NCBI RefSeq assembly: GCF_011386835.1
Contig: NC_088804.1
Location: 42,718,001 to 42,782,000, forward strand
Source of the DNA: Chrysemys picta bellii
Taxonomy: Eukaryota
Direction: 5' to 3'
DNA: 64,000 nucleotides
Below, piece after piece: positions 36,382 through 49,253 of this stretch. The notes beneath the pieces were generated by a model. It saw only the letters and a program-made list of their open reading frames with translations. It did no database searches and had not been told where the DNA came from. Within the stretch, counting starts at the first letter, position 1. The number at the start of each line of letters is the position of its first letter. Made by a program: the position numbers and the translations under genes.

Positions 36382-39300
36382 TCAGTGGAGTCCCAGCTTT
36401 TTCATAGTCCGCCAGCGATCCTTAATCATCACCGAGGTGCGGTTCTCAAAGGGGAACTTTTTGCAAATGATTTTCCAGTTCCCTTCTCCAAACTTCTTCA
36501 CTCCTTCTCTGATCCACTCGCTTTCCTGTACTGTCCACCTCTGCAAAAGAAGAACAAGGGGTGTCATGACTCTTAAGGCACAGGTCCTATCACCTCTACA
36601 CTACAGGCTTCTTAGCCTCCTTGGTCCCCCTTACATCCATACTATCAGCACCTTCTTATAACATAGGAAGAAGGCACAGGTACCTTGCCAATAACTCCAA
36701 GGTACCCAGTGATCACTCCATTCCAGAAGAATTGTTACAATGGTTATATAAACCAGGAAAATATTATAGCTGAAGTTCAGGATTAGTTCTGTTTCCCACA
36801 TCACAGTGTAGATTACACAGGAAATTCTCAGGAGTTATTGCTCTTGTATCCTCCAAGTAATCATGGAGAGAGTGTGGAAGTTACACGCCCTGTGCAACGT
36901 CCATACAAGTGAAGAGAACTAACTACCTGCGGCTCGTGGAAGGAAAGTGCTGCGTTCGAGGGCACTGTGAAGTTCAGTGACAGGAGGCCAAGTATAAGGG
37001 AAGAGGTGAACCACAGGAAAGCAAACAATGAAAGATGTACAGGTAGCATAAAAGTGAACAGCCATTCACTTGTCAGAAAGTTGGTTACTGCAGGCATCAG
37101 ATCTTGGAGCCTTTACAAGGCAAATGCTGCCAGGTGACAAACTCTGTATGTGGTGCCACTGGCATGCACCACGCTTTTTCACTGCATGGAAAATCCGACG
37201 GACCCAGCTCCAAACAATTGGCATCAGACAAAAGGGGGCAAGGAAGGAGGATTCACTCAGGAGACACCAACCCCGGCACCTCCTGAAAGAGTATTTATAT
37301 TTTTAATACTAGCTTCAGGCTTATTTAGGAATGATGTGGTTTCTAGGGTGTGTTCTAGTTCTCCGCCTCTTCAGCTCACTTACCTGCTGAGCGGTTCAGG
37401 AAGCAGATGCCAGCCAGGATAAGCGGCACACAGTATTTTAGGCCTCTACTACTTTCCTGGCTTTTAGTGGACAAACATAAGCCAGGCCCTCTCAATTTAA
37501 AGATCCGTGCAACCCAACTCACCCCCTTGTAAGTTCAACGCTTAGATAACGCAAGCATTGACCAAAGTACTCCAGTCCCTTAGTAAATATCATCTGTCAG
37601 TTCAGCATCTCAGAGTTCTCCATTCAATGTGCACCAATCACTTGGACTCTTCTACCTGAGCTGATACCAGAGGCTAAGAAACCTCTGAACAGCAAAAGGG
37701 ATTTCCCCTTTCCAACCTTTTCTATTGCTTCACTACCCCTGCAGAGCCTTGCTCTGGGCTGCTGAACGGAGCTGGAGGGCTCTATATTACCTGTTTCTTG
37801 GAACCGAGGATTGAAGAGCTGTGGCTATTTCTCCCAGGGGACTCTGAAAAATAAACCCAAGAAGAGTCATATTTCAGCATTCGCCTTCTGCTGTGCATGT
37901 ATCTCCCAGAGAGACTGGCTTTAGCCGGTTCCATTACAGGGAGAGAGCGGCATGGCCACCAGGGGAACGCCCTTGGCCCGGGTATGGAAAATAGAAACAA
38001 ATGCCCTTACTTCCTCTAGCTTCTAGAATTCCACATACTGAAGAGACACTTGGCCATTCTGATCCTAGCCCTGGTTACTCATAAGAAGTGTAACTAAAGA
38101 AATATAATAACTAAGACTGCGTCAAAAGGAATTAGACTTGTCTCAGGTTAGCAAATGTGTCTAAGAAAAGAAAAAAAAAAAAAAAAAAGGACAGCCTGAG
38201 CCAAAAAGCTTCCTCAATAGAAATCCCTGTTCATAAATGGAAGCATGTTCAGGCCACAGCAGGGAAGGTCCCAGATGTTAAACAGCATCCAGAAGAAAAG
38301 TCTTAGCTGTGATTAATTACACCTTTTGAAACAAGCATGCAAATGCTCATCTGCCACCCTACAGCTGTTAATGGGAAGGAACTGCTTTTGGGCTGGGTCT
38401 CAGACTAGAATAGCTGACAATGACTGACAGGTCTGAAGCTGTAACAAGAGAGTACTTGCTAGATGTTCCATGATCAGGTACACAATGGATTTAGCAACTT
38501 CCCATTGTTTGGGCCCGCCTAAGAAAGGGACATCATCTCCATTTCTGCAGTCCTGTAACAGCAACCGTAGTCCCAAGCTTTCCAGGGTTATGGGATTTCT
38601 AGACTTTTGGTTTCTGTCAAGTGTTCAAGGCAACAGAGTGCCCCAGGGCCAACAGCATGGTTGGGACCAGCAATTAAAGAGTGTGCATGGCAAAAATAGC
38701 ATACTTACTCTTGTCCAGGAAGAGCTCATCTTCCTCACTCCATGTGTCCTTTTCTTCTTGCCCGTTCAAGGTGTTCCATCTTGCTTTCAGTGGCCTGAAA
38801 ACATACAACACACATTTTAACTGCAAAAAGCCAGCCTGGTTAATGAGGGCTGAAGAGACAGTCACTGCAGACAGCTAAATCACACATCCAAAAGGAACAC
38901 AGAACACTGACTAATTACCTAGAGGCCACTGGTAAAACGGTCCAGGACCACCTTGGTACCAATGAGTCAAGACTAAGATCAGTATGCAGCACTGGGAACC
39001 GTGGGAGCTTGCCTGACAGCTGGATTATGTATGTTTGCTTCACCTCCACAACACATGCATCTTAGTCCACTGCCATCTGACTGGTTTGTAGGTAAAGGGT
39101 GCCATATGCGTATGTCTGCATTCAAAGCCACTCAGTGCCATTTTAATACCTACAGGCAGTTCTCTTTGGACCTTGACAGATCCCTGTATCAAACACACAC
39201 AAGAAGCAACTGAGAGCGAACTATGTAAGAATTAAGCAGTTGCTGCAAACTGATACAAACAACTGAGCTACCAAGAAAGGGCCGTGCATGTGGCATGAAA

Positions 39301-41842
39301 CAGACAATGGAATGGGGCAGGAGCACTTAGCAAGTCACATGCTCCACAAGGCTGCTATGAAATTTTTACTACAGGCAAAGCCAGCTGGTTCCAAACCAAT
39401 TATATTCCTTATTTCTCTCGCTCACATGCACATACTCAACTCCTTACAGGATAAGATGCAGCTGAAATCAGGTGCATTTAAAATACTTTAAAAGGATCCA
39501 TTCAATTAGTTTTAATATTACAGCAACTACATGAAAACAAATGCTCCCTGTTAGTAATACTCTTGTGCAATCCATCGCTGTTGCAGCATGCAACCATTTT
39601 CACACAGATGTATACGAGCATTTGGGAAGGGGAAGGTTTGAAGATCAACTCCTGAAGCAAAAGCTGACATCCTTTGTCACCAACAGCCAGCACCATCAGC
39701 ACCGCTGCCATTTAAAGCATTGCATCCTAGCTAGGATCTTAGTCAACAATGGGCGGCAAGAGTCAAGGAGTCAGGGAGCTCTGGGAACATGCCAATCCCG
39801 GGTGCTCCGCAGGGCACTGGGAACAGCTGGGGCCTACTGAACTGAATAAAATGCTTTACACTTGTAGTGGCCAACTTCCAAGCATTTTAGTGCTTTGGCA
39901 CGTAACACGTTAAGCACATAAAACCTGAAATGCTAAGCTCTAAACCAGTCTCTTTTCAAGCACGAAAGTTCATGCAGCTCAGTAGGGTCTGCTCTGCAAT
40001 CAGTTCCCTGAAGTGCTCCTAAGTCTGAAAACCTTACGGAACTACGTTTGCCTCATCTCTCCTGGGGAACTCAAGTACTGCTCAGGAAAGGGAATTCCCT
40101 GCTGTTTCATTCCTGCAGACCCACACTACTGCCTTAAGTGTGCAAAAGCAGAGGTCCTCATCTGCACAGCCTCCAAGATGCATTAGAAGGGAACCCTGCT
40201 ACATGCTCATCAAGTCCTACAGAAAACATGCATCCCAGAAGCCTGGCTCCAGAGAAAGGTTTGTTCCCACATATCCACCCATTCCCTACTCTAACTTACA
40301 GCTAAGTGATATAATACATATACAAGGTACAAAACAAGTGTGGAAAAATTAAAGTAACTTGCATCAATATTCTATTACTCTTAAAATTCATACATGATTT
40401 AACTTCATCACTGATGTGAAAATTTACCTTAATCTGTCCCACAAAACATACCTACAAACTCCAACCTGTGTATTACTAACTGCAGATTTACATAGTCAGA
40501 TGCATACACTGCGAAGCGGTTTGCAAGGATGTCAAGGGTCAGCATTAAGGTTATTGGAATGTAGGTGGTGAGCTTTCCCATTTCCCATGTTGCTAACCAC
40601 ATGTATGAACTACAAGGGCAATAGAACATTTGCTTTAACTATCCATTTCCACATTTTCCAAAAGGGAGGGATTTTTAACATTCTAGTTTCGCACTGATAA
40701 GGTTCTATTGTTGAATGTAACAATGTTAGCTATACGTTCTCAAAGTATTGCATCTGCATTAGAATACAGTGTCACAGATGTGCTTCATACTTGGGACTTC
40801 TGGAAGATACACGCTGAACATGTGGCTTTTGAACAAGAGTCCTGAATGCAGAAGATACCACTGGCTCCTGGGATGAGTCTGGCGTCTCACTCAGCTCAGT
40901 GCTCTGGCTGTCCTGCTCCATAATCAGTCTGCTTATAGTGAACAAGCGTTTACTCTTTGGAGGTGATTTAGGTATGTCTGAGGTCTCCAAGGGTGGATTC
41001 TCCTCTTCTCTCTGCCTCTTGAGTCTGTGGGATACAGAAGGGGACAATTGCTTGGGGAAAGAAAAGTCTGTTTCATCCAGTTTGGTAAAGGCTGCATCAG
41101 AATCTTGGGAATTTGACAAGGTCTTGAAAGCTTCTCTCAGAGCAGAAATCCCATATGTGGTTACAGTTCCAGGCGGCTGCCTATAAAATAAATGAAGCTA
41201 AGCAGGTTACATCAACGATTTCAACAATACAAGGCTCTACTTCACTAAAATCACAGCTGCTCCCCTCACTCTGCCCCATAGCTAAGCTCCTACCAAATTC
41301 ACATCCATGCAAAAGCACATCACAGACCATGAAATCAGACCTTCCCCCGTGAAATCTAGCTATTGGAGGGGACAGGGAGAGACAGGGCTGGGGGCATCCC
41401 AACCGGGGACTGCTCCCATGCACCAGGCTCCAGCTGCTAGTCCTGTTCTGTCAGGGACAGGACTTCCGCTTCCCCAGCACAGCCGCTTTCAGAGGGAGGT
41501 CAGACCCACCTCCGGGTACCTCTCCCGGCTGCAGGAAGCTCCAAAGATGCTGCCTTCAGAGCCCAGCTTTCAGCCCCTTCAGCTTTGAAGGCAGCGCAGC
41601 CGCGGAACTTCCTGTAGTCGGAAGATCCCAGAGTTGGGTCTGACCTCTCCCCAAGAGTGGCCGTGCAGGGAAAGAGGAAGTCCTGTCCCTCCCCAGCTGG
41701 CCCGGACTAGCAGCTACGAGCCCCCAGCTGGGGCACTTCCAGCAGCACAGGGGGAGATCAGACCCACCTCCAGGAAGCTCTGTGGCTGCTGTCTTCAGAG
41801 CCCAGCTTTGAAGGCAGCGCAGAAGTGATGGTGGCAATCCCG

Positions 41843-41892
<50 letters not shown>

Positions 41893-44800
41893 TCCCCTTT
41901 TGGGGCAGGACCCCCATGGTTACAACACCGGGAAATTTCAGGCGTAAACATCTTAAAACGGGAAATTGACTAATTTTAAAACCCTCTGGCCATGAAACTG
42001 ATCAAAATGGACAGTGAATTTGGTAGGGCCCTATTCATAGCAAACAATCATGCCTGAAAGTCCATCACAACACAACGCATTCTCAATCTCCACTGACTCA
42101 TCTCCCTTCTACAAGAACTTCGGTGTCATGTACCATCCTGCCAGCAGTGCAGGTGAGCTGCCTCCTCCAAGACCAGTAGCTCTCAAACTTTGTTAGTGGT
42201 GACCCCTTTCACAAAGCAAGCCTCTGAGTGCGACCCCCTTATAAAGATACAAAAAAGAGTTTTTAATTTAACACCATTATAAATGCTGGAGGCAACACGG
42301 GATTTGGGGTGGAGACTGACAGCTCACGACCTCCCATGTAATAACCGCACGACCCCTTGAGGGGTCCCGACCCCCAGTTTGAGAACCCCTTGTCCCAGAC
42401 AGATGTCATTACTGCTTGGTAATGACAGCAACGATCCTGAAAGCATCCGTGAGGCCATATGGAATATGGGTGACCATTTATAATATTGATACCAATATTC
42501 CAAAATTGCAATGAATCCTACAAGATATGCCATGTAAGGTATCAGGGGAAAGGTATGATTTGATAAGTATAATCATGTTTATATGTATCGTCTTTCCATT
42601 GAGTTCTAAACGTGTGATGTATTTGTATATCGAACTTGTGCTTTGTTTCTGGGTGACACCCCCAGAGAGTTTGGCACCAACGCTGTCCAGTCTGTTGGAT
42701 GGCCCATCAAAGGCAATCAGCTGTACAATGAACCCACTGAGAGAAGCCAGGGGCTACCCTATGACTCAGCGGGACACGCCCCTGGACAGGGGACTCCAAG
42801 TGCTTGTCCATGCCCATGTGCTGTGAGCTTGTGTTTGGGACAAAGGATATAAAAAGGCAGCTGCATCTTCTCCATTTTCAATCCTGCTTTCCACCTCTGG
42901 AGCATCTTCTCTACAAACTGAAGCTTTTAACAAAGCACTGATAGACCCATGCAAGCTTTGGATGTTTTCCAGGGGGGCTTTCCAAGCCAGCAAACTCACC
43001 AATGCTGCTAAGAACCTGATGTATGGACTCTGAAGTCATATGTATGTATCTGACTGCTTTGACCATTTAACAACTCTCTTCTTCTTTTATAATAAAACTT
43101 TTCGTTGTAGATGCTAAAGGACTGGCTGGCAGCGTGGTATTTTGGGTAAGATCCAAATAGTATTGATCTGGCAATGTGGCTGGCCCTTTGGGGATCAGAA
43201 AAACATTCTGTGTAGTGCAGGGGTTCTAAAACTGGGGGTTGTAAGGATATTACCTGGGAGGCCATGAGCTGTCAGCCTCCACCCCCAAGCCCTGCTTTGC
43301 CTCCAGCATTTATAATGGTGTTAAACATATAAAAAAGTGTTTTTAATTTATTAGGGGGGGTTCGCATTCAGGGGCTTGCTGTGTGAAAGGGGTCACCAGT
43401 ACAAAAGTTTGAGAACCACTGGTGCAGCAAACAGAGTTTTAAAAAACTTCTCACTGTACTGGACCTATTTGCTGATTGGGAGCCAGAGAACTGGAATGCA
43501 ATAAAGGGTGCTGTGTGATTTCGTTTTTAGCTTCTTGATAACCATTGTGGGAGATCAGGAGCACAGTTTGGGACTAGTTGGTGAATCTAACTTCAGTGTT
43601 AACCACCAGTTTTGGCAGAACCTGCTCTCCTTTTTGCAGCCTGCCCTGACCTTGGCATTTTCAGTGTCGGCTACCGTAGGCACCTCGGATCACAGCATCC
43701 ATCTGTTTTATCCCTCCAAAGAGTGGCAAACTAAATGCTATTGACCAAACCTATGTCCTCTGAACCATGGACACACCAAAACCCTTCTGTAAACATAAGG
43801 CCCTCTCTCATTCGCCACCTGTCACAAGGGACACCTTCCCTTCCTATAGTCCAAACACTCACCAGGGTACTCTTCAGAAAAAAAGATTAATGTTTTAATT
43901 CAAAGCTAGACAGCCTGGTGAAAAATCCTCAAGTAGTAGCCCCTGGGGCAGCACAACTGCATTGGCACATGGCAAAAAGTTACAGCGGCCTGCACAGAGC
44001 TAAACCAGTGGGTGCTACAATTCAGAAGCAAAATTCTGGCAAACTTCATTCACCATATGTGGTCAGCTTTCCTCTCTAAGTTGCTAATGCATCACCACAG
44101 CTGCTCACCTCTCAAAGTCATTTGAAGACATTTCCACACTGTCTGGAGCGACCGCTGGTGGTTGCTTAGCTACTTCCACACTGTCTGGAGCGACCGCTGG
44201 TGGTTGCTTAGCTACTTCCACACTGTCTGGAGCTGCCGCTGGTGGTTGCTTAGCTACTTCCACACTGTCTGGAGCGACCGCTGGTGGTTGCTTAGCTACT
44301 TCCACACTGTCTGGAGCGACCACTGGTGGTTGCTTAGCTACTTCCACAGGCTCTGGAACGAATGCCAGCTTCTTAGTTTCACCAATATATTCTGAATTCA
44401 AAGTCTTTTTCGCCATCTTTGACAGGAAGAAAGCACATAATCATTACAAATAGAACTCCATGGAACTGCATTTATTTTACTCCCATTCCACAGACATGGA
44501 ACATTATTTAATTAAGTGCACAATCCCTGCAATTACTTGCTGTTCTATGGTCAGGGTGCTATTTAGTATATTGGAGATAAGATAATTGGTCATTTTTCAG
44601 GTGTTCTGCAGTAGTTACATGTGTAGAGTTAAGTTATCTTGATTAAGAACTTAAATAACCACCAAGTCATTTTATAGGATGGAACCTTAAGAGAAGGTCT
44701 GAATTTTAAATGCTAAAAACTTATTCCCTTGGTGCTCTGGTCCCAAAACTTTAGAGCCAGACATTTGTATCTGACTTCTGAGTACAAGTCAAAAATATTA

Positions 44801-47800
44801 CACGTCAATAAGACAAAAACAAATTGGTAACTTCTTTCTAATTCATATCATTTGAGACTATTGTATCAACATTATAAAAGTTATCTGCATCTCTGTGAGC
44901 CAGAGATTGTATTCTAACTGAACAGAGGTGGTTTACCAAGTCTCCCCAGGGATCTACAATGACTGGAGGTGATTATTGCACATCCTGGGACAGGTAAACA
45001 TCACCAACGCAGTATAACCCCAAAGGATTTTACAAATAGTGGACCAGACCAGTTTCCAGAGGCCCAGGAAACCAAGAAAGGCTTTCGGTACAAAAAGTGA
45101 ACTTAAAGCAAGGGATTGGGGGGTTGTTCTTTACCTGAAAACTGACCTGAACCTTTAACAAGAGGGCAAGGCCTGCTGGAAGGATCTGAAGGACTTTGAC
45201 TCCTACCAGACCCTCATGTGAAAGATGAGTCGCTTCTAATATGCACTTAAGACTTTTCATGGTTTTATGACAATTTTTCCTCTGTAATTCTTTTGTTCTT
45301 AAATAGACATACTTTGCTTTGTGAAGGCTAGCTGGTTCCTTGTCCTTCAGGAAAAAGAGTGAACCCATGGGTGGGGAGCTAGGTCAGACGGCTGGGATAG
45401 TCACAGAGAAAAACAAGCCTAAATCCCAGATCTGAAGGGAGAGAGGACGCTGCCTATAGAGAGGTGACAGCTGGAGGCCTGAGACCTAAGGGTGTATCCC
45501 TTGAACAGAGCACGGAGGGGTTAGAGGTGACATGCATCACATGCAATTTTCCCGCAGACCATGGGGGTGACAGCTGGGGTAGGGCTGAAATGTGGGTAGC
45601 AAGGTAGACACATACTGTCAAGAGAAAGGGCTCTGAATCCTCCAGGTAGGTCTCCAAGAACTGGAACGCACTCTGCTGAAAAGTCTTGTAGGAAAAATTT
45701 CGGATCATCGTATGAGACAAATTCTTCTCACGGATAATGCTGAGCAACTCTGTCCTCAGTTTCTAGTCAAGAGGCAAGAACATTCTGAATATGTACAAAT
45801 GATACAAGTTACAAATGCAGGAGCTAGGGGTTTGGGTGGAGAGGGGACTTCCCCACTGACACTACAACATTATCAGCTAATTTACACTGATTAAATTAGG
45901 AAGCAAAAGCCAAAATGTCTAGAGTCTGTGTCAGCATTGCCAACTACACTCGCTTTCGGTGCCGGACAACGCAATGGTAGCAACAGACAGAAATGAAGAA
46001 AAGGAAATACATGTTTGGGAACATATTGCACAGCCAACAAGATACCCCATCGCACACCCCAAAAATTCACATAATCAAACTCACCTGGGTGCTGGGATCC
46101 TTTGCCATGGTTTTTTTCAGAATTTTTGAGGCTTTATCAAACTCTCTCTTTTTAATACAAATGATAACAGCCTAGAGAGGAAAAAGAGGATCTCAGTTTT
46201 TATATGTGTATCAATTCAACCACATCTCCTAAATCAGCTTCACAAACAGCACAGGCAAAATGCAAGCAAAGCCTCTGACGTTCCTTCCAAATACTATCCA
46301 AGTAACATGGAAATAACACTTTTTGCACCAAACACCTTAATGAGCTGCTAACCTGAAATCCTACTATACCCTTCTAACTATCCCATTAATGCAAGGTTAC
46401 AATTACGGATTGCGTTACCTAATTTTCATGTGTATGGTGCCATTCAATTCAGCAAAATACTTATTGTAAATGTACATGAACACCCCTGAAGTTTGAGAAC
46501 CCATCAGTTCTCACCAGATTTCCTTGGCTTAATTTTAAACAAACAAGTAGCCTTCTACAGGACCACAGAGTTACGTGGCACGTCAATACTAAAAGAAGCT
46601 GACATGGCCCCTCCCCAGAGAGCTTACAAGTGAAGGTAGACAGCATATGGCTGTAGGAAGGGGAGAAAACGTGCCAAAGGTTTGCTTATTGTAGCATAAT
46701 ATGCAATAAAACATCATAGTTACATTTTATATTTTACATATATCATATATGCAAACTTTATCCCAGGCCAGCAAATTGAACAGACCAGTCTGCAGGGGAT
46801 GACTAGTTGCAATAGTAAGTTTTTAGGAGGGATTCTTAGATTCTAAGAGCATTCTGGTTCTACATTTAAAAGGTCCTCCAATAAAGAGAAGAGAGAAAGG
46901 ATGCATTATTTCTAATATAGTCAATAGAGAAAATGGTAATAGCAAAAGGAATGTTCTGCTTTTCAGGTCACCTTTAATAGAGTTACAGATCCTGATAAGT
47001 TACTATCTTCCTAGCAATGGAAAGCTCCCGGAAATAAGACAAATGATGGAGGGAAGATCTGAGAGGGGACAATTGCCTTCAGTGTAAGGGAAGCTTTTTT
47101 TTTTTTTTCAATTAGATTAAAGCTTATAAAAGTCTAAACTATTTGAATGAAAAAGGAGAACTTGACCCTTACAGCTTGCTTCACCATTTTTCTAACAGAT
47201 TCCATTGCCACCTCAGACACAGGGAATTCTCTCTCAATCAGCTCCAGCACACCGATTGCAGATTCAAGAGGGGTGAGCTCTGACTCTGTATCAAAGGTGC
47301 AATCTACAATTAAAAGAAACAATGCATTCCTATTGGTTTTAAAACAGACACACAAATCTACCTGGGCCCAAGAAATCCTCCACAGGAAGCAGCCAAAACA
47401 AGTAGGCTAGGATTTGCTGTTAGGCCACTAATGCTGCAGTAACTGACACAGCAGAGAACTGCACAGACAAAACAGTTATGATCAAGAAAGGCAAGAAAGG
47501 CTGTCTAAGGTATGCGAGGTCCTCAAAAAGAAACATGACGTTTGGTGAGTTTGAAATTAAAAGCAATAAACATTGCGAGCTGAGTATGTGGAGGTTTCCT
47601 TTAATTTACACTCTCAAGAGAAAAATCAGGAATTAACACACTGAATAAAAGTTACAGAAGATTACACTAACGTAGTTTAAATACTCAAACATCAAGAAAT
47701 TTAAAAGTAAAGTTCTTGCCATAATATTGAAAGGGCATTGTCGTCAGATCAAATTTGATCCCCAAGTTTAAGTTTTCCTCAACTACAACTAGATCTAAGA

Positions 47801-49069
47801 CTGATATACGTGGTTGCTTTACTTAATGTTTTAATTCCAATTGAAAGCAAAAACAAAGTCTTCTCCACAGTGTTTTCACTCAAACATTGTGTTCTTGTTC
47901 TATCACAGGAGAAATGAAGAATTAAATTGATTACCTATACATTGTTTGCAAAAGAAAGTGGAAGTGACTTTGTTCCAGATGACAGAGAGAAAATATGGAA
48001 TCCCTGCAAAGAAGCCAGGTTTTTCTTAAACAAAAACTTTTGTTTGGGTTTTAGGCTATTAATAACAGAATGTTTGATGTTTACCCCACATCGTGCCTTC
48101 AAGTGACAATGCTAAACAGGAAAAAATAAATCATACCTCAGTCTGAAAGTTTTACCTATTATTGTTCGATTCCTATAACTGAAAAGAGTGATAATTACTT
48201 CCCTATTTCCCAGTTTGTTTACCCAGCACATTAACTACCCTATGAGAAGAGTCACTTTTGATTACGTCGGTTCTGGTCAGAGGCATTATCCCTACTATTA
48301 GCAGGCCCATGTCCTTTCCTTTGCAGAAAAGACTCTTATAAATAAAAAACACAAGCAGATTATTTCAAGGAATTATAAAAGAGGTTTCAGAGGCCTTTAC
48401 CCAAACCTGAACTTCAATTTAAAACAATCCAAATAGCGTAGTTGGTTTTCCTCGGCCAAACAGTAAATAAAAAGCAATTTCAACAGAACCGTCACTGTGC
48501 ATAGGCAATGCAGTGAGGTGAATGACACTTTGGGAACAGGGCTGAGCACCAGTAAGGCAAATTGTGACGCTGTTCTCTCGTACCTAGGTTCTCTCCCTCC
48601 TCAATTCTTGAAAGAAACTGCATAATCCGGAGCAGACGGGAGACTGCAGGCTCCTTAACCAGGGGCCGCAGTAGCAGAGCTAGAGAGAGAGAAGACAGAG
48701 AGCTTGGGACACCCAAGTCAGAACCACCCCCCACCACCATCCCGGAGTTGGACCCAAGAGCCCCCTTCCCCCTCCCCGAGCGGGCGGGCCCCGCTCCCCA
48801 CTCCCATTCCCCTCCCCGGGCGGGCCCCCCTCCCTCCCCGGGCGGGCCCCCCTCCCTCCCCGGGCGGGCCCCTCACCCTGCATCACGTCGCGGAACTCGC
48901 GGAAGTCCCGGTTCCGACGGGCCCGATAGGCCCCCACGGCCTGGTGGAAGTAGAACTGCAGCACCCAGCGGTTCACCGCCTCCTCGGGGGCGCGGAGCCC
49001 CAGCGCCCCCTTCCCAGCCGCCATGGGCCCCCGCCGGCTCCGGGAGACCCGTCCGCGCCCGCCAGCCAT
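36382..49069 (-). CDS. TERF2: Telomeric repeat-binding factor 2 (549 aa from ATG 49069; 10 exons)
   Basis: Exons 49069-48877, 48679-48584, 47303-47173, 46171-46085, 45762-45616, 44416-44109, 41180-40791, 38794-38709, 37843-37791, 36540-36382 (1650 nt). TRFH ([14 protein letters not shown]...LTPLESA), RAP1-binding-like region (LREAFKTLS), TIN2-binding-like region ([12 protein letters not shown]), Myb domain ([13 protein letters not shown]...[16 protein letters not shown]). Other in-frame ATGs at 49099 and 49024. Confidence 0.96.
41283..42033. mobile_element. Non-autonomous hAT element containing a (CA)n microsatellite
   Basis: TIRs TAAGCTCCTACCAAATTCAC ... GTGAATTTGGTAGGGCCCTA; TSD CCCATAGC/TTCATAGC; (CA)n ~41845-41887. 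Confidence 0.75.
42174..42392 (-). mobile_element. hAT-type MITE (~205 bp family, copy 2)
   Basis: Reverse-complement homolog of 15987-16192; TSD TCCAAGAC/TCCCAGAC. Confidence 0.8.
42448..43694 (+). mobile_element. Solo LTR in TERF2 intron 6 (antisense to TERF2)
   Basis: (C)GTGAG...TCACA termini with 5-bp TSD GCATC (42443-42447 / 43695-43699); TATAAAAA 42848; AATAAA 43091; AP-1 TGACTCA 42762. Confidence 0.75.
43218..43421 (+). mobile_element. hAT-type MITE (~205 bp family, copy 3) nested in the LTR
   Basis: CAGGGGTTCTAAAA...TTTGAGAACCACTG; degenerate 8-bp TSD GTGTAGTG/GTGCAGCA. Confidence 0.8.
44132..44347 (-). repeat. Coding 42-bp tandem repeat (5 copies plus partial) in TERF2 exon 6
   Basis: Unit TTCCACACTGTCTGGAGCGACCGCTGGTGGTTGCTTAGCTAC on +, encoding [14 protein letters not shown] on -. 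Confidence 0.95.
44900..45540 (+). mobile_element. Possible old LTR fragment in TERF2 intron 5
   Basis: LTR-like composition and layout similar to the other LTRs here, ending ...GGTGACA; no TSD found. Confidence 0.3.
46437..46660 (-). mobile_element. L2-like LINE 3' remnant
   Basis: CATTCAATTCAGCAAAATACTTATTG (reverse L2-type tail) followed by CCCCTCCCCAGAGAGCTTACAAG. Confidence 0.4.
48770..48874 (-). repeat. G-run tandem repeat (~22-bp unit) at the start of TERF2 intron 1
   Basis: CCCCGGGCGGGCCCCCCTCCCT about three times on +, G-rich on the TERF2 sense strand. Confidence 0.75.
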
Positions 49070-49082
49070 CCCGCGCCAGGAT

Positions 49083-49253
49083 CCGGAAGTGACGCGCATA
49101 GCACGACGGAAGTGACGGCATCCCCCCGCTGCTGCCCTCTCGACTCCTTAGGGAAAGCGAGCGCCCCCTGCCCTTCCTCCTCTTATTGCCAAGCGAGGCG
49201 CACGGGCGACTACAACGACCAGCATGCACTGCGGCCTACGGTTCCCAATATGC
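49083..49253 (-). promoter_or_regulatory. TERF2 promoter: two ETS and two ZNF143-like motifs in a CpG island
   Basis: CCGGAAGTGAC from 49083 and CGGAAGTGAC from 49107; GACTACAACGACCAGCATGC 49208-49227; CTACGGTTCCCAATATGC 49236-49253. Confidence 0.65.

Follow-up and report, generated by a model that had tools for sequence, protein, structure and literature searches.

The painted-turtle TERF2 locus

The window analyzed here is a stretch of 64,000 nucleotides from contig NC_088804.1 of the painted turtle Chrysemys picta bellii. It holds the complete painted-turtle TERF2 gene, which encodes the protein TRF2, and exon 6 of this gene, on the minus strand, carries a tandem repeat. Our analyses indicate that this repeat is likely an old, constrained and concertedly evolving minisatellite of all turtles examined, which would encode a disordered spacer, variable in length, that connects the TRFH domain to the RAP1-binding helices.

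The TERF2 coding span occupies positions 36382..49099 (minus strand), running from the start codon at 49099 down to the Myb exon and the stop codon at its lower end. It was delimited by a tblastn search with C. picta bellii TRF2 isoform X1 (P0166; XP_005310632.3, 559 aa), which maps exon-wise, with its start at 49099 and its Myb exon at about 36385. The exon matches were 94-100% identical, with mismatches confined to one-residue overlaps of adjacent matches, and the hinge of this protein is identical to the one encoded by the window. Full-length analyses were run on database proteins that map exon by exon to the window, rather than on a spliced window model.

The domain content of the gene identifies it as the orthologue of TERF2 (TRF2). 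The TRFH dimerization domain (PF08558) is matched in three exon peptides, and that of exon 5, the end of the domain (45616..45762, minus strand), passes the curated cut-off alone (26.6 bits vs 25, E 5.5e-06). Exon 7 (40791..41180, minus strand) encodes the RAP1-binding motif, which is absent from TRF1, and matches PF16772 (TERF2_RBM) over its full length (1-41 of 41, E 1.2e-24); it also encodes a region aligning with the TIN2-binding part. The last exon encodes a C-terminal Myb/SANT DNA-binding domain (PF00249, 3.8e-14). Finally, exon 1, read directly, displays the basic Gly/Arg-rich N-terminus of TRF2, which is acidic in TRF1: the first 25 residues include 7 Arg, 6 Gly, and 0 acidic residues. 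The order of these matches (TRF, TERF2_RBM, Myb) agrees with a preliminary description of the window, which had assigned the repeat to the hinge of TRF2, with TRFH on one side and the RAP1-binding region on the other.

Exon 6 itself spans 44109..44416 on the minus strand (308 nt), as delimited by its open reading frame, splice contexts, and an RNA joint to exon 5. It begins in phase 0 and breaks off 2 nt into a codon; it corresponds to residues 229-331 of P0166, the part of the hinge that links TRFH to the RAP1-binding motif. The open stretch, read on the minus strand, is flanked by ...cctgtcaaag upstream, where the pyrimidine tract and AAG acceptor of intron 5 lie (44417..44433), and by the intron 6 donor gtgagc downstream (44103..44108). 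The peptide of exon 6 had no Pfam family match.

A coding minisatellite in exon 6

Tandem Repeats Finder detected a single array at 44132-44348, with a period of 42, 5.2 copies, 97% matches, 0 indels, and a score of 413. This is the structure of a coding minisatellite, i.e., head-to-tail units of 10-100 bp, a multiple of three in length, lying in frame within a coding sequence. Direct reading and the program output both confirm the five in-frame 42-bp units of the preliminary description, differing by 1-2 nt and adding about 70 residues (44138-44347). Each unit encodes 14 residues, of which Pro, Ala, and Val make up 21% each, with a net charge of -1; the five together add 70 residues, among them 15 Pro, 15 Ala, and 15 Val, with a net charge of -5. 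Since the unit is 42 bp long, gain or loss of whole units keeps the reading frame.

All units are read from the minus strand. Units 2 (44264..44305), 4 (44180..44221), and 5 (44138..44179) are identical and represent the consensus. Unit 1 (44306..44347) is a Val-Val variant that is 1 nt off this consensus, an Ala to Val change through a C-to-T substitution at a CpG site. Meanwhile, unit 3 (44222..44263) is an Ala-Ala variant (GCG GCA), 2 nt off the consensus, with a Val to Ala change. The array closes with the first 6 nt of a sixth unit (44132..44137), after which the unique tail of the exon begins. An octamer identical to E. coli Chi, GCTGGTGG, occurs in 4/5 units (44154-44287, plus strand); its abundance in the window as a whole is unremarkable (10 vs 4.75 expected, with 3/100 shuffles reaching 10).

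Transcription and splicing

Exon 6, with its repeat, is part of the mRNA, and its splicing uses a conserved AAG acceptor. A contig from the RNA-type run X13 joins 45616 to 44416 at a depth of 67, omitting 1199 nt bounded by GT..AG on the coding strand, so that exon 5 is spliced exactly onto the predicted acceptor. In this run, exon depth was at least 10 times intron depth, and contigs extended from the donor side of exon 6 into units 5 and 4. At the donor, RNA loose ends at 44108/44109 run on into exon 7: a loose end of 183 nt is the start of this exon, with an exact match to 41150-41179. All annotated painted-turtle TRF2 isoforms contain the five units. The preliminary description had regarded the AAG acceptor as weak and inclusion of the exon as a point to confirm. 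Inclusion is borne out by the exon joint, and the concern over the acceptor is lifted by its use in RNA and by its context, pyrimidine tract included, which is identical in 7/7 turtle species compared at the DNA level, side-necked Emydura among them.

A second splice event touches the neighboring RAP1-binding motif. Exon 7 contains an internal CAG acceptor (41025|41024, first exon base 41024; window 40997-41025, minus strand), use of which joins exon 6 to the ...LKRQREEE part and deletes exactly 52 residues, including the whole Pfam match to the motif. A 28-nt loose end of an RNA contig, which matches exactly, backs this junction, and RefSeq isoforms with the identical deletion occur in Chrysemys, Emydura, and Phasianus. 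The motif is also missing from many other turtle and galliform TRF2 models. We found no paper on a splice that removes the RAP1-binding motif of TRF2, and this event may be more interesting than the repeat.

Distribution of the array among turtles

TRF2 sequences were gathered with the neighboring exon as the query and then by word searches and look-ups of clusters, which yielded 25 turtle species from 11 families. The same unit family was found at the same place in all of them (25/25), side-necked turtles included, in three to nine units. Among the side-necked turtles, Pelusios has 7 units and Emydura 5. Among the softshells and allies, Pelodiscus has 9 (4 in older models) and Carettochelys 6, of 15-16 residues each. 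The sea turtles range from 4 units in Chelonia and Natator, through 5 or 6 in Caretta and 6 in Dermochelys and Eretmochelys, to 7 in two species of Lepidochelys. The snapping turtles Chelydra and Macrochelys have 3 and 7, the big-headed turtle Platysternon 4, the Asian pond turtles Mauremys and Pangshura 5 and 7, the tortoise Chelonoidis 4, and three species of the tortoise Gopherus 4-6. Among emydids, Chrysemys has 5 units, while Trachemys, Malaclemys, Terrapene, and Emys have 4 plus a truncated first unit. This answers the comparison across turtle species proposed in the preliminary description.

Side-necked and hidden-necked turtles split more than 200 million years ago, and the array occurs in both groups; it therefore predates their split. 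On the evidence of these sequences, the TRF2 array is an old feature of all turtles examined, with slow turnover, and not a young one.

Turnover can be followed within the emydids. Exon 6 measures 308 nt in Chrysemys, with five full units, vs 290 nt in its emydid relatives, with a truncated first unit of 24 nt and four full ones. As Chrysemys lacks the truncated unit and has five full units, at least one gain and one loss took place on its branch. The truncated unit (8 residues, without AKQPPx) is common to emydids other than Chrysemys, tortoises, Asian pond turtles, and Platysternon (exons carrying it: L001 5541-5830, L002 4895-5184, L006 4873-5162, L007 5005-5294). It looks like a shared derived marker of the superfamily that was lost or overwritten in Chrysemys.

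The preliminary description had also suggested a bearing of hinge length on a long-lived lineage. Copy number does not track long-lived lineages: by inspection, without a formal test, no trend with longevity was visible (giant tortoise Chelonoidis 4 full units, slider Trachemys 4, softshell 9), and this link has no support.

Concerted evolution and constraint

The exon 6 DNA of Chrysemys and six further species (L001-L007) provided 33 units from seven species. Several lineages carry synonymous states of their own in every unit. All five units of Emydura have GTC at Val3, the 7/7 units of Lepidochelys have TCT instead of AGT at Ser14, keeping the Ser despite a switch of codon family, and CAG at Gln6 is found in the 8/8 units of Terrapene and Emys. 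Outside codons 9-10, the difference within arrays is zero in 5/7 species, and fixed changes separate species. Lineage-specific synonymous states repeated in every unit imply homogenization, i.e., concerted evolution, and the pattern carries the signature of unequal exchange, of conversion, or of arrays that collapsed and expanded anew.

The unit is also constrained. Twelve of the 14 residues are near-invariant over the 33 units. Nearly all variation falls on codons 9-10, whose commonest form (GCG, then GCG or GTC) carries adjacent CpG sites, and CpG transitions, from GCG to GTG or GCA, account for many variants there, among them that of unit 1 of the window. Outside these codons, the consensus unit differs from that of Emydura at 1/36 nt. 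Meanwhile, intron 6 is 79% identical between Chrysemys and Emydura (about 21% different), and the unique 5' part of exon 6 matches at 59/69 positions. At the intron rate, about 7.5 changes would be expected per 36 nt (Poisson estimate, P about 0.005). Furthermore, about six synonymous vs four non-synonymous kinds of change were seen outside codons 9-10, while non-synonymous sites are about 3 times as numerous. These comparisons point to purifying selection holding 12/14 residues of the unit.

Counterparts outside turtles

Periodic hinges are found in other sauropsids as well. In autocorrelation, turtle hinges gave their peak at lag 14 (z 16-19). For alligator and gharial (z 13-19), as well as for most of the birds examined (z 5-11), the peak lay at lag 13; pheasant, chicken, and kiwi had theirs at lag 26. 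The skink, the horned lizard, and the vole (P0010), the one mammal examined and one with a short hinge, had no array as judged by eye. The vole is in line with the statement of the preliminary description that mammalian TRF2 has no such repeat. Its further statement that chicken TRF2 is expanded by a different unit proved right: this protein (P0199) is 718 aa long, with a 288-residue hinge of period 26 (z 18). Chicken TRF2 was reportedly cloned by Konrad et al. in 1999 (Gene 239:81).

We compared the turtle unit with those of the other lineages by Smith-Waterman alignment against composition-preserving shuffles. Homology was significant for alligator (z 4.3, beating all 500 shuffles with a one-residue gap), weak for gharial, birds, and lizards, and not significant for birds. 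The core E-x-[AS]-K-x-P, similar to the turtle E-V-A-K-Q-P, recurs in alligator and bird units. Alignment with bird and crocodilian exon 6, proposed in the preliminary description, thus recovers arrays of 13- or 26-residue period at the same exon, with significant unit homology only for alligator, and for that reason we do not claim a single ancestral array of turtles and archosaurs. The further suggestion of recurrent expansion at this exon in sauropsids holds insofar as turtles, crocodilians, and birds each have lineage-specific arrays, which may go back to one ancestral array or to repeated expansion from one seed motif.

The crocodilian array resembles that of turtles in being a tandem repeat in the orthologous exon 6. 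In Gavialis, this exon (L008 12794-13294) has a 39-bp repeat in about 8-10 copies, and the alligator has three to four near-identical 13-residue units. Unlike the turtle array, it has a 13-residue unit that is more acidic, and its copies are more diverged (72-83% matches). The galliform hinge shares with that of turtles the gene, the position from TRFH to the RAP1 motif, periodic Pro/Ala/acidic units, and a lineage-specific length, with proteins of 718 aa in Gallus, 713 in Phasianus, and 822 in Cyrtonyx. However, its period is 26 (two 13-residue half-units), its units are degenerate, and it is 283-392 residues long, whereas turtles have a 14-residue unit in near-identical copies and an exon product of 97-139 residues. 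The longest hinge seen, with 392 residues, was that of Cyrtonyx montezumae (P0193, 822 aa), in which about 100 residues are duplicated internally, almost without change. This duplication suggests that galliform arrays are also still turning over.

Coding minisatellites in disordered regions are known from human DRD4 exon 3 (48-bp repeats), PER3 (54-bp repeats), and involucrin. Like these, the turtle array has a unit that is a multiple of three, arranged head to tail, with copy changes that keep the frame and homogenization within lineages. Unlike in these, the unit sequence has been kept through the whole turtle radiation and copy number is narrow (3-9). The PEVK region of titin offers an analogy only: it also has tandem units containing Pro, Val, Glu, and Lys, predicted disorder, and a plausible role as an entropic spacer, but it belongs to a different protein, has a different unit length, and shares no ancestry with the array. 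Measured against a PEVK-like entropic spring, the turtle array is predicted to be disordered, but P, E, V, and K make up 57% of its unit, below the approximately 70% or more expected of such a spring.

Neither the painted-turtle genome paper nor Myler et al. 2021 (PMC8653790) mentions a TRF2 hinge repeat. We found no description of one in turtles or other sauropsids in the literature consulted, which did not cover the chicken TRF2 cloning paper. The turtle TRF2 minisatellite is apparently undescribed.

Predicted structure and putative function

For residues 246-338, a stretch that takes in the entire array, AlphaFold2 models run with 26 orthologues showed no secondary structure and a pLDDT (predicted local distance difference test) of about 30-38. 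The TRFH domain (helices 32-245), the RAP1-binding helices, and the Myb domain were modeled as helical, with pLDDT peaks of about 90, 68, and 94, respectively. The array is thus predicted to be an intrinsically disordered segment.

Based on these findings, we infer that unequal exchange or replication slippage turns the arrays over and homogenizes the units within each lineage, while purifying selection would keep 12/14 residues and leave codons 9-10, with their CpG sites, to take most of the variation. The protein segment encoded by exon 6 would act as a mildly acidic disordered tether of lineage-specific length, running from the TRFH dimerization domain to the RAP1-binding helices. TPP1, another shelterin subunit, has a disordered linker of 50-700 residues across lineages that is taken as a flexible tether (Myler et al. 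2021, PMC8653790). Like the TRF2 hinge, it belongs to shelterin, is disordered, and varies in length among lineages; unlike the hinge, it is not described as a tandem repeat. In human TRF2, deletion of the hinge abolishes phase separation in vitro, and binding of RAP1 to the hinge suppresses it (PMC8988007), which makes an effect of tether length plausible.

Some points weigh against this overall reading. A spacer is what we infer by default for any disordered linker, and the strong constraint on 12/14 residues would seem to exceed the apparent need of a passive one. Repeated collapse and re-expansion could homogenize units as well as gene conversion, and the data fit both. The DNA-level comparison covers seven species, and the remaining 18 were compared as annotated proteins. 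Finally, copy number in C. picta is 5 in both annotation versions, which differ in sequence only, and short-read contigs collapse the array.

Given how tightly the unit is constrained, a sequence-specific role is also conceivable. In such a scenario, the array would consist of multivalent short linear motifs, each unit (core E-V-A-K-Q-P) being a binding or charge-patterning element and copy number setting the valency. This would agree with the near-invariance of most of the unit, which is better conserved than the unique part of exon 6, with the core found in alligator and bird units, and with the loss of phase separation upon deletion of the human hinge. Nevertheless, mammals and squamates manage without an array, the exon lacks a Pfam match, and no SH3, WW, EVH1, or SUMO-interaction consensus was recognized in it by eye, without a formal test. 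Moreover, concerted evolution and slow turtle rates inflate the apparent conservation of the unit. We therefore consider a motif array unlikely. A bolder version, in which the unit is a selected motif and its copy number a dial of shelterin valency in turtles, crocodilians, and birds, for instance by recruiting a partner or balancing the basic N-terminus in condensation, alongside the conserved splice that removes the RAP1 motif, seems to us slightly more doubtful still.

The array offers a natural series of lengths for the tether that links the TRF2 dimer to its RAP1-binding helices, with 3-9 units in turtles, far longer arrays in galliforms, and none in mammals. With such variants, one could ask how the length of the hinge affects RAP1 loading, the formation of t-loops, and condensation.

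Age of the units

The preliminary description called the repeat young and took the near identity of its units to imply recency. Accordingly, the units could have arisen recently in the painted-turtle lineage as a hypervariable variable number tandem repeat. Units 2, 4, and 5 are indeed identical, at least one gain and one loss separate Chrysemys from Malaclemys, Trachemys, Terrapene, and Emys, and two annotation versions differ at unit 3. However, this scenario is largely refuted by the spread of the array through all turtle species examined, copy number is the same in both C. picta versions, and the unit is constrained. Unit types are also partly shared by position with Malaclemys and Terrapene, e.g., GCG GTC in the last unit, and the type with GCG GCA. 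The flanking introns are 2-4% different between Chrysemys and other emydids, so that units dating back to the origin of the family, tens of millions of years ago, would be expected to show about 1 nt of difference per 42 even without constraint. Differences of 1-2 nt per unit therefore date no duplication, and in slowly evolving, constrained turtle sequence near-identical units do not imply a recent event. A young, species-specific expansion is, in our assessment, very improbable. The related claim of a recent or still-variable repeat stands in part: copy number varies in Caretta, and in C. picta it was five in both versions.

Copy number and within-species variation

Assembly error in the copy number of the window, by over- or under-expansion, may be set aside almost entirely: short-read contigs break inside the array, and the 4 units of older Pelodiscus records vs 9 in newer ones reveal that collapse occurs at this locus, but two C. 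picta bellii versions with different third units both have five, close relatives combine four full units with a truncated one, two haplotype assemblies of Lepidochelys are in exact agreement, and the collapsed-unit contig of run X3 lies at about 3.3 times the flanking depth, a crude value that is roughly what a five-unit array predicts.

Variation within species takes several forms. The previous C. picta bellii annotation (XP_005310632.2 and others) has five units, with units 2-5 all Ala-Val, while the window and the current annotation have an Ala-Ala unit 3 with a GCA codon, as in Malaclemys units. This difference could be allelic, could reflect different individuals, or could stem from a mistake in one of the assemblies. 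The variant did not turn up in any contig of four other, short-read runs, whose contigs are interrupted within the array; this does not prove its absence. In Caretta caretta, four allele forms with 5 or 6 units show that copy number varies within at least one turtle species. Two Eretmochelys records differ in unit 1, and the two haplotype assemblies of Lepidochelys olivacea are identical in exon 6.

RefSeq also lists, for single genomes, "isoforms" that differ by whole units. These were observed in Gopherus evgoodei (6/5/4 units; P0185/P0043/P0184), Chelonia mydas (4/3/2; P0159/P0046/P0162), Trachemys (4 plus truncated vs 1; P0187/P0189), and Terrapene (4/3; P0048/P0051). The unit, read cyclically, contains no AGGT, which makes canonical GT..AG introns of unit length impossible. 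These forms are probably allelic copy-number differences in RNA donors, or artefacts of alignment or template switching. Hence, TRF2 lengths taken from models need care, both for short-read collapse and for conflicting unit numbers such as those of Pelodiscus and these isoforms.

The flanking introns displayed minor features of their own. In intron 5 (window 44430-45490), about 12-23 differences from the window recur at identical positions in the DNA contigs of three other runs, making the haplotype of the window the odd one out. Within this intron, positions 45450-45492 displayed a several-fold higher depth and many loose ends, resembling a fragment of an interspersed repeat. Intron 6 (window about 41560-42000) contains GT/CA dinucleotide microsatellite tracts, which appear as VCVC... 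runs in the minus-strand translation.

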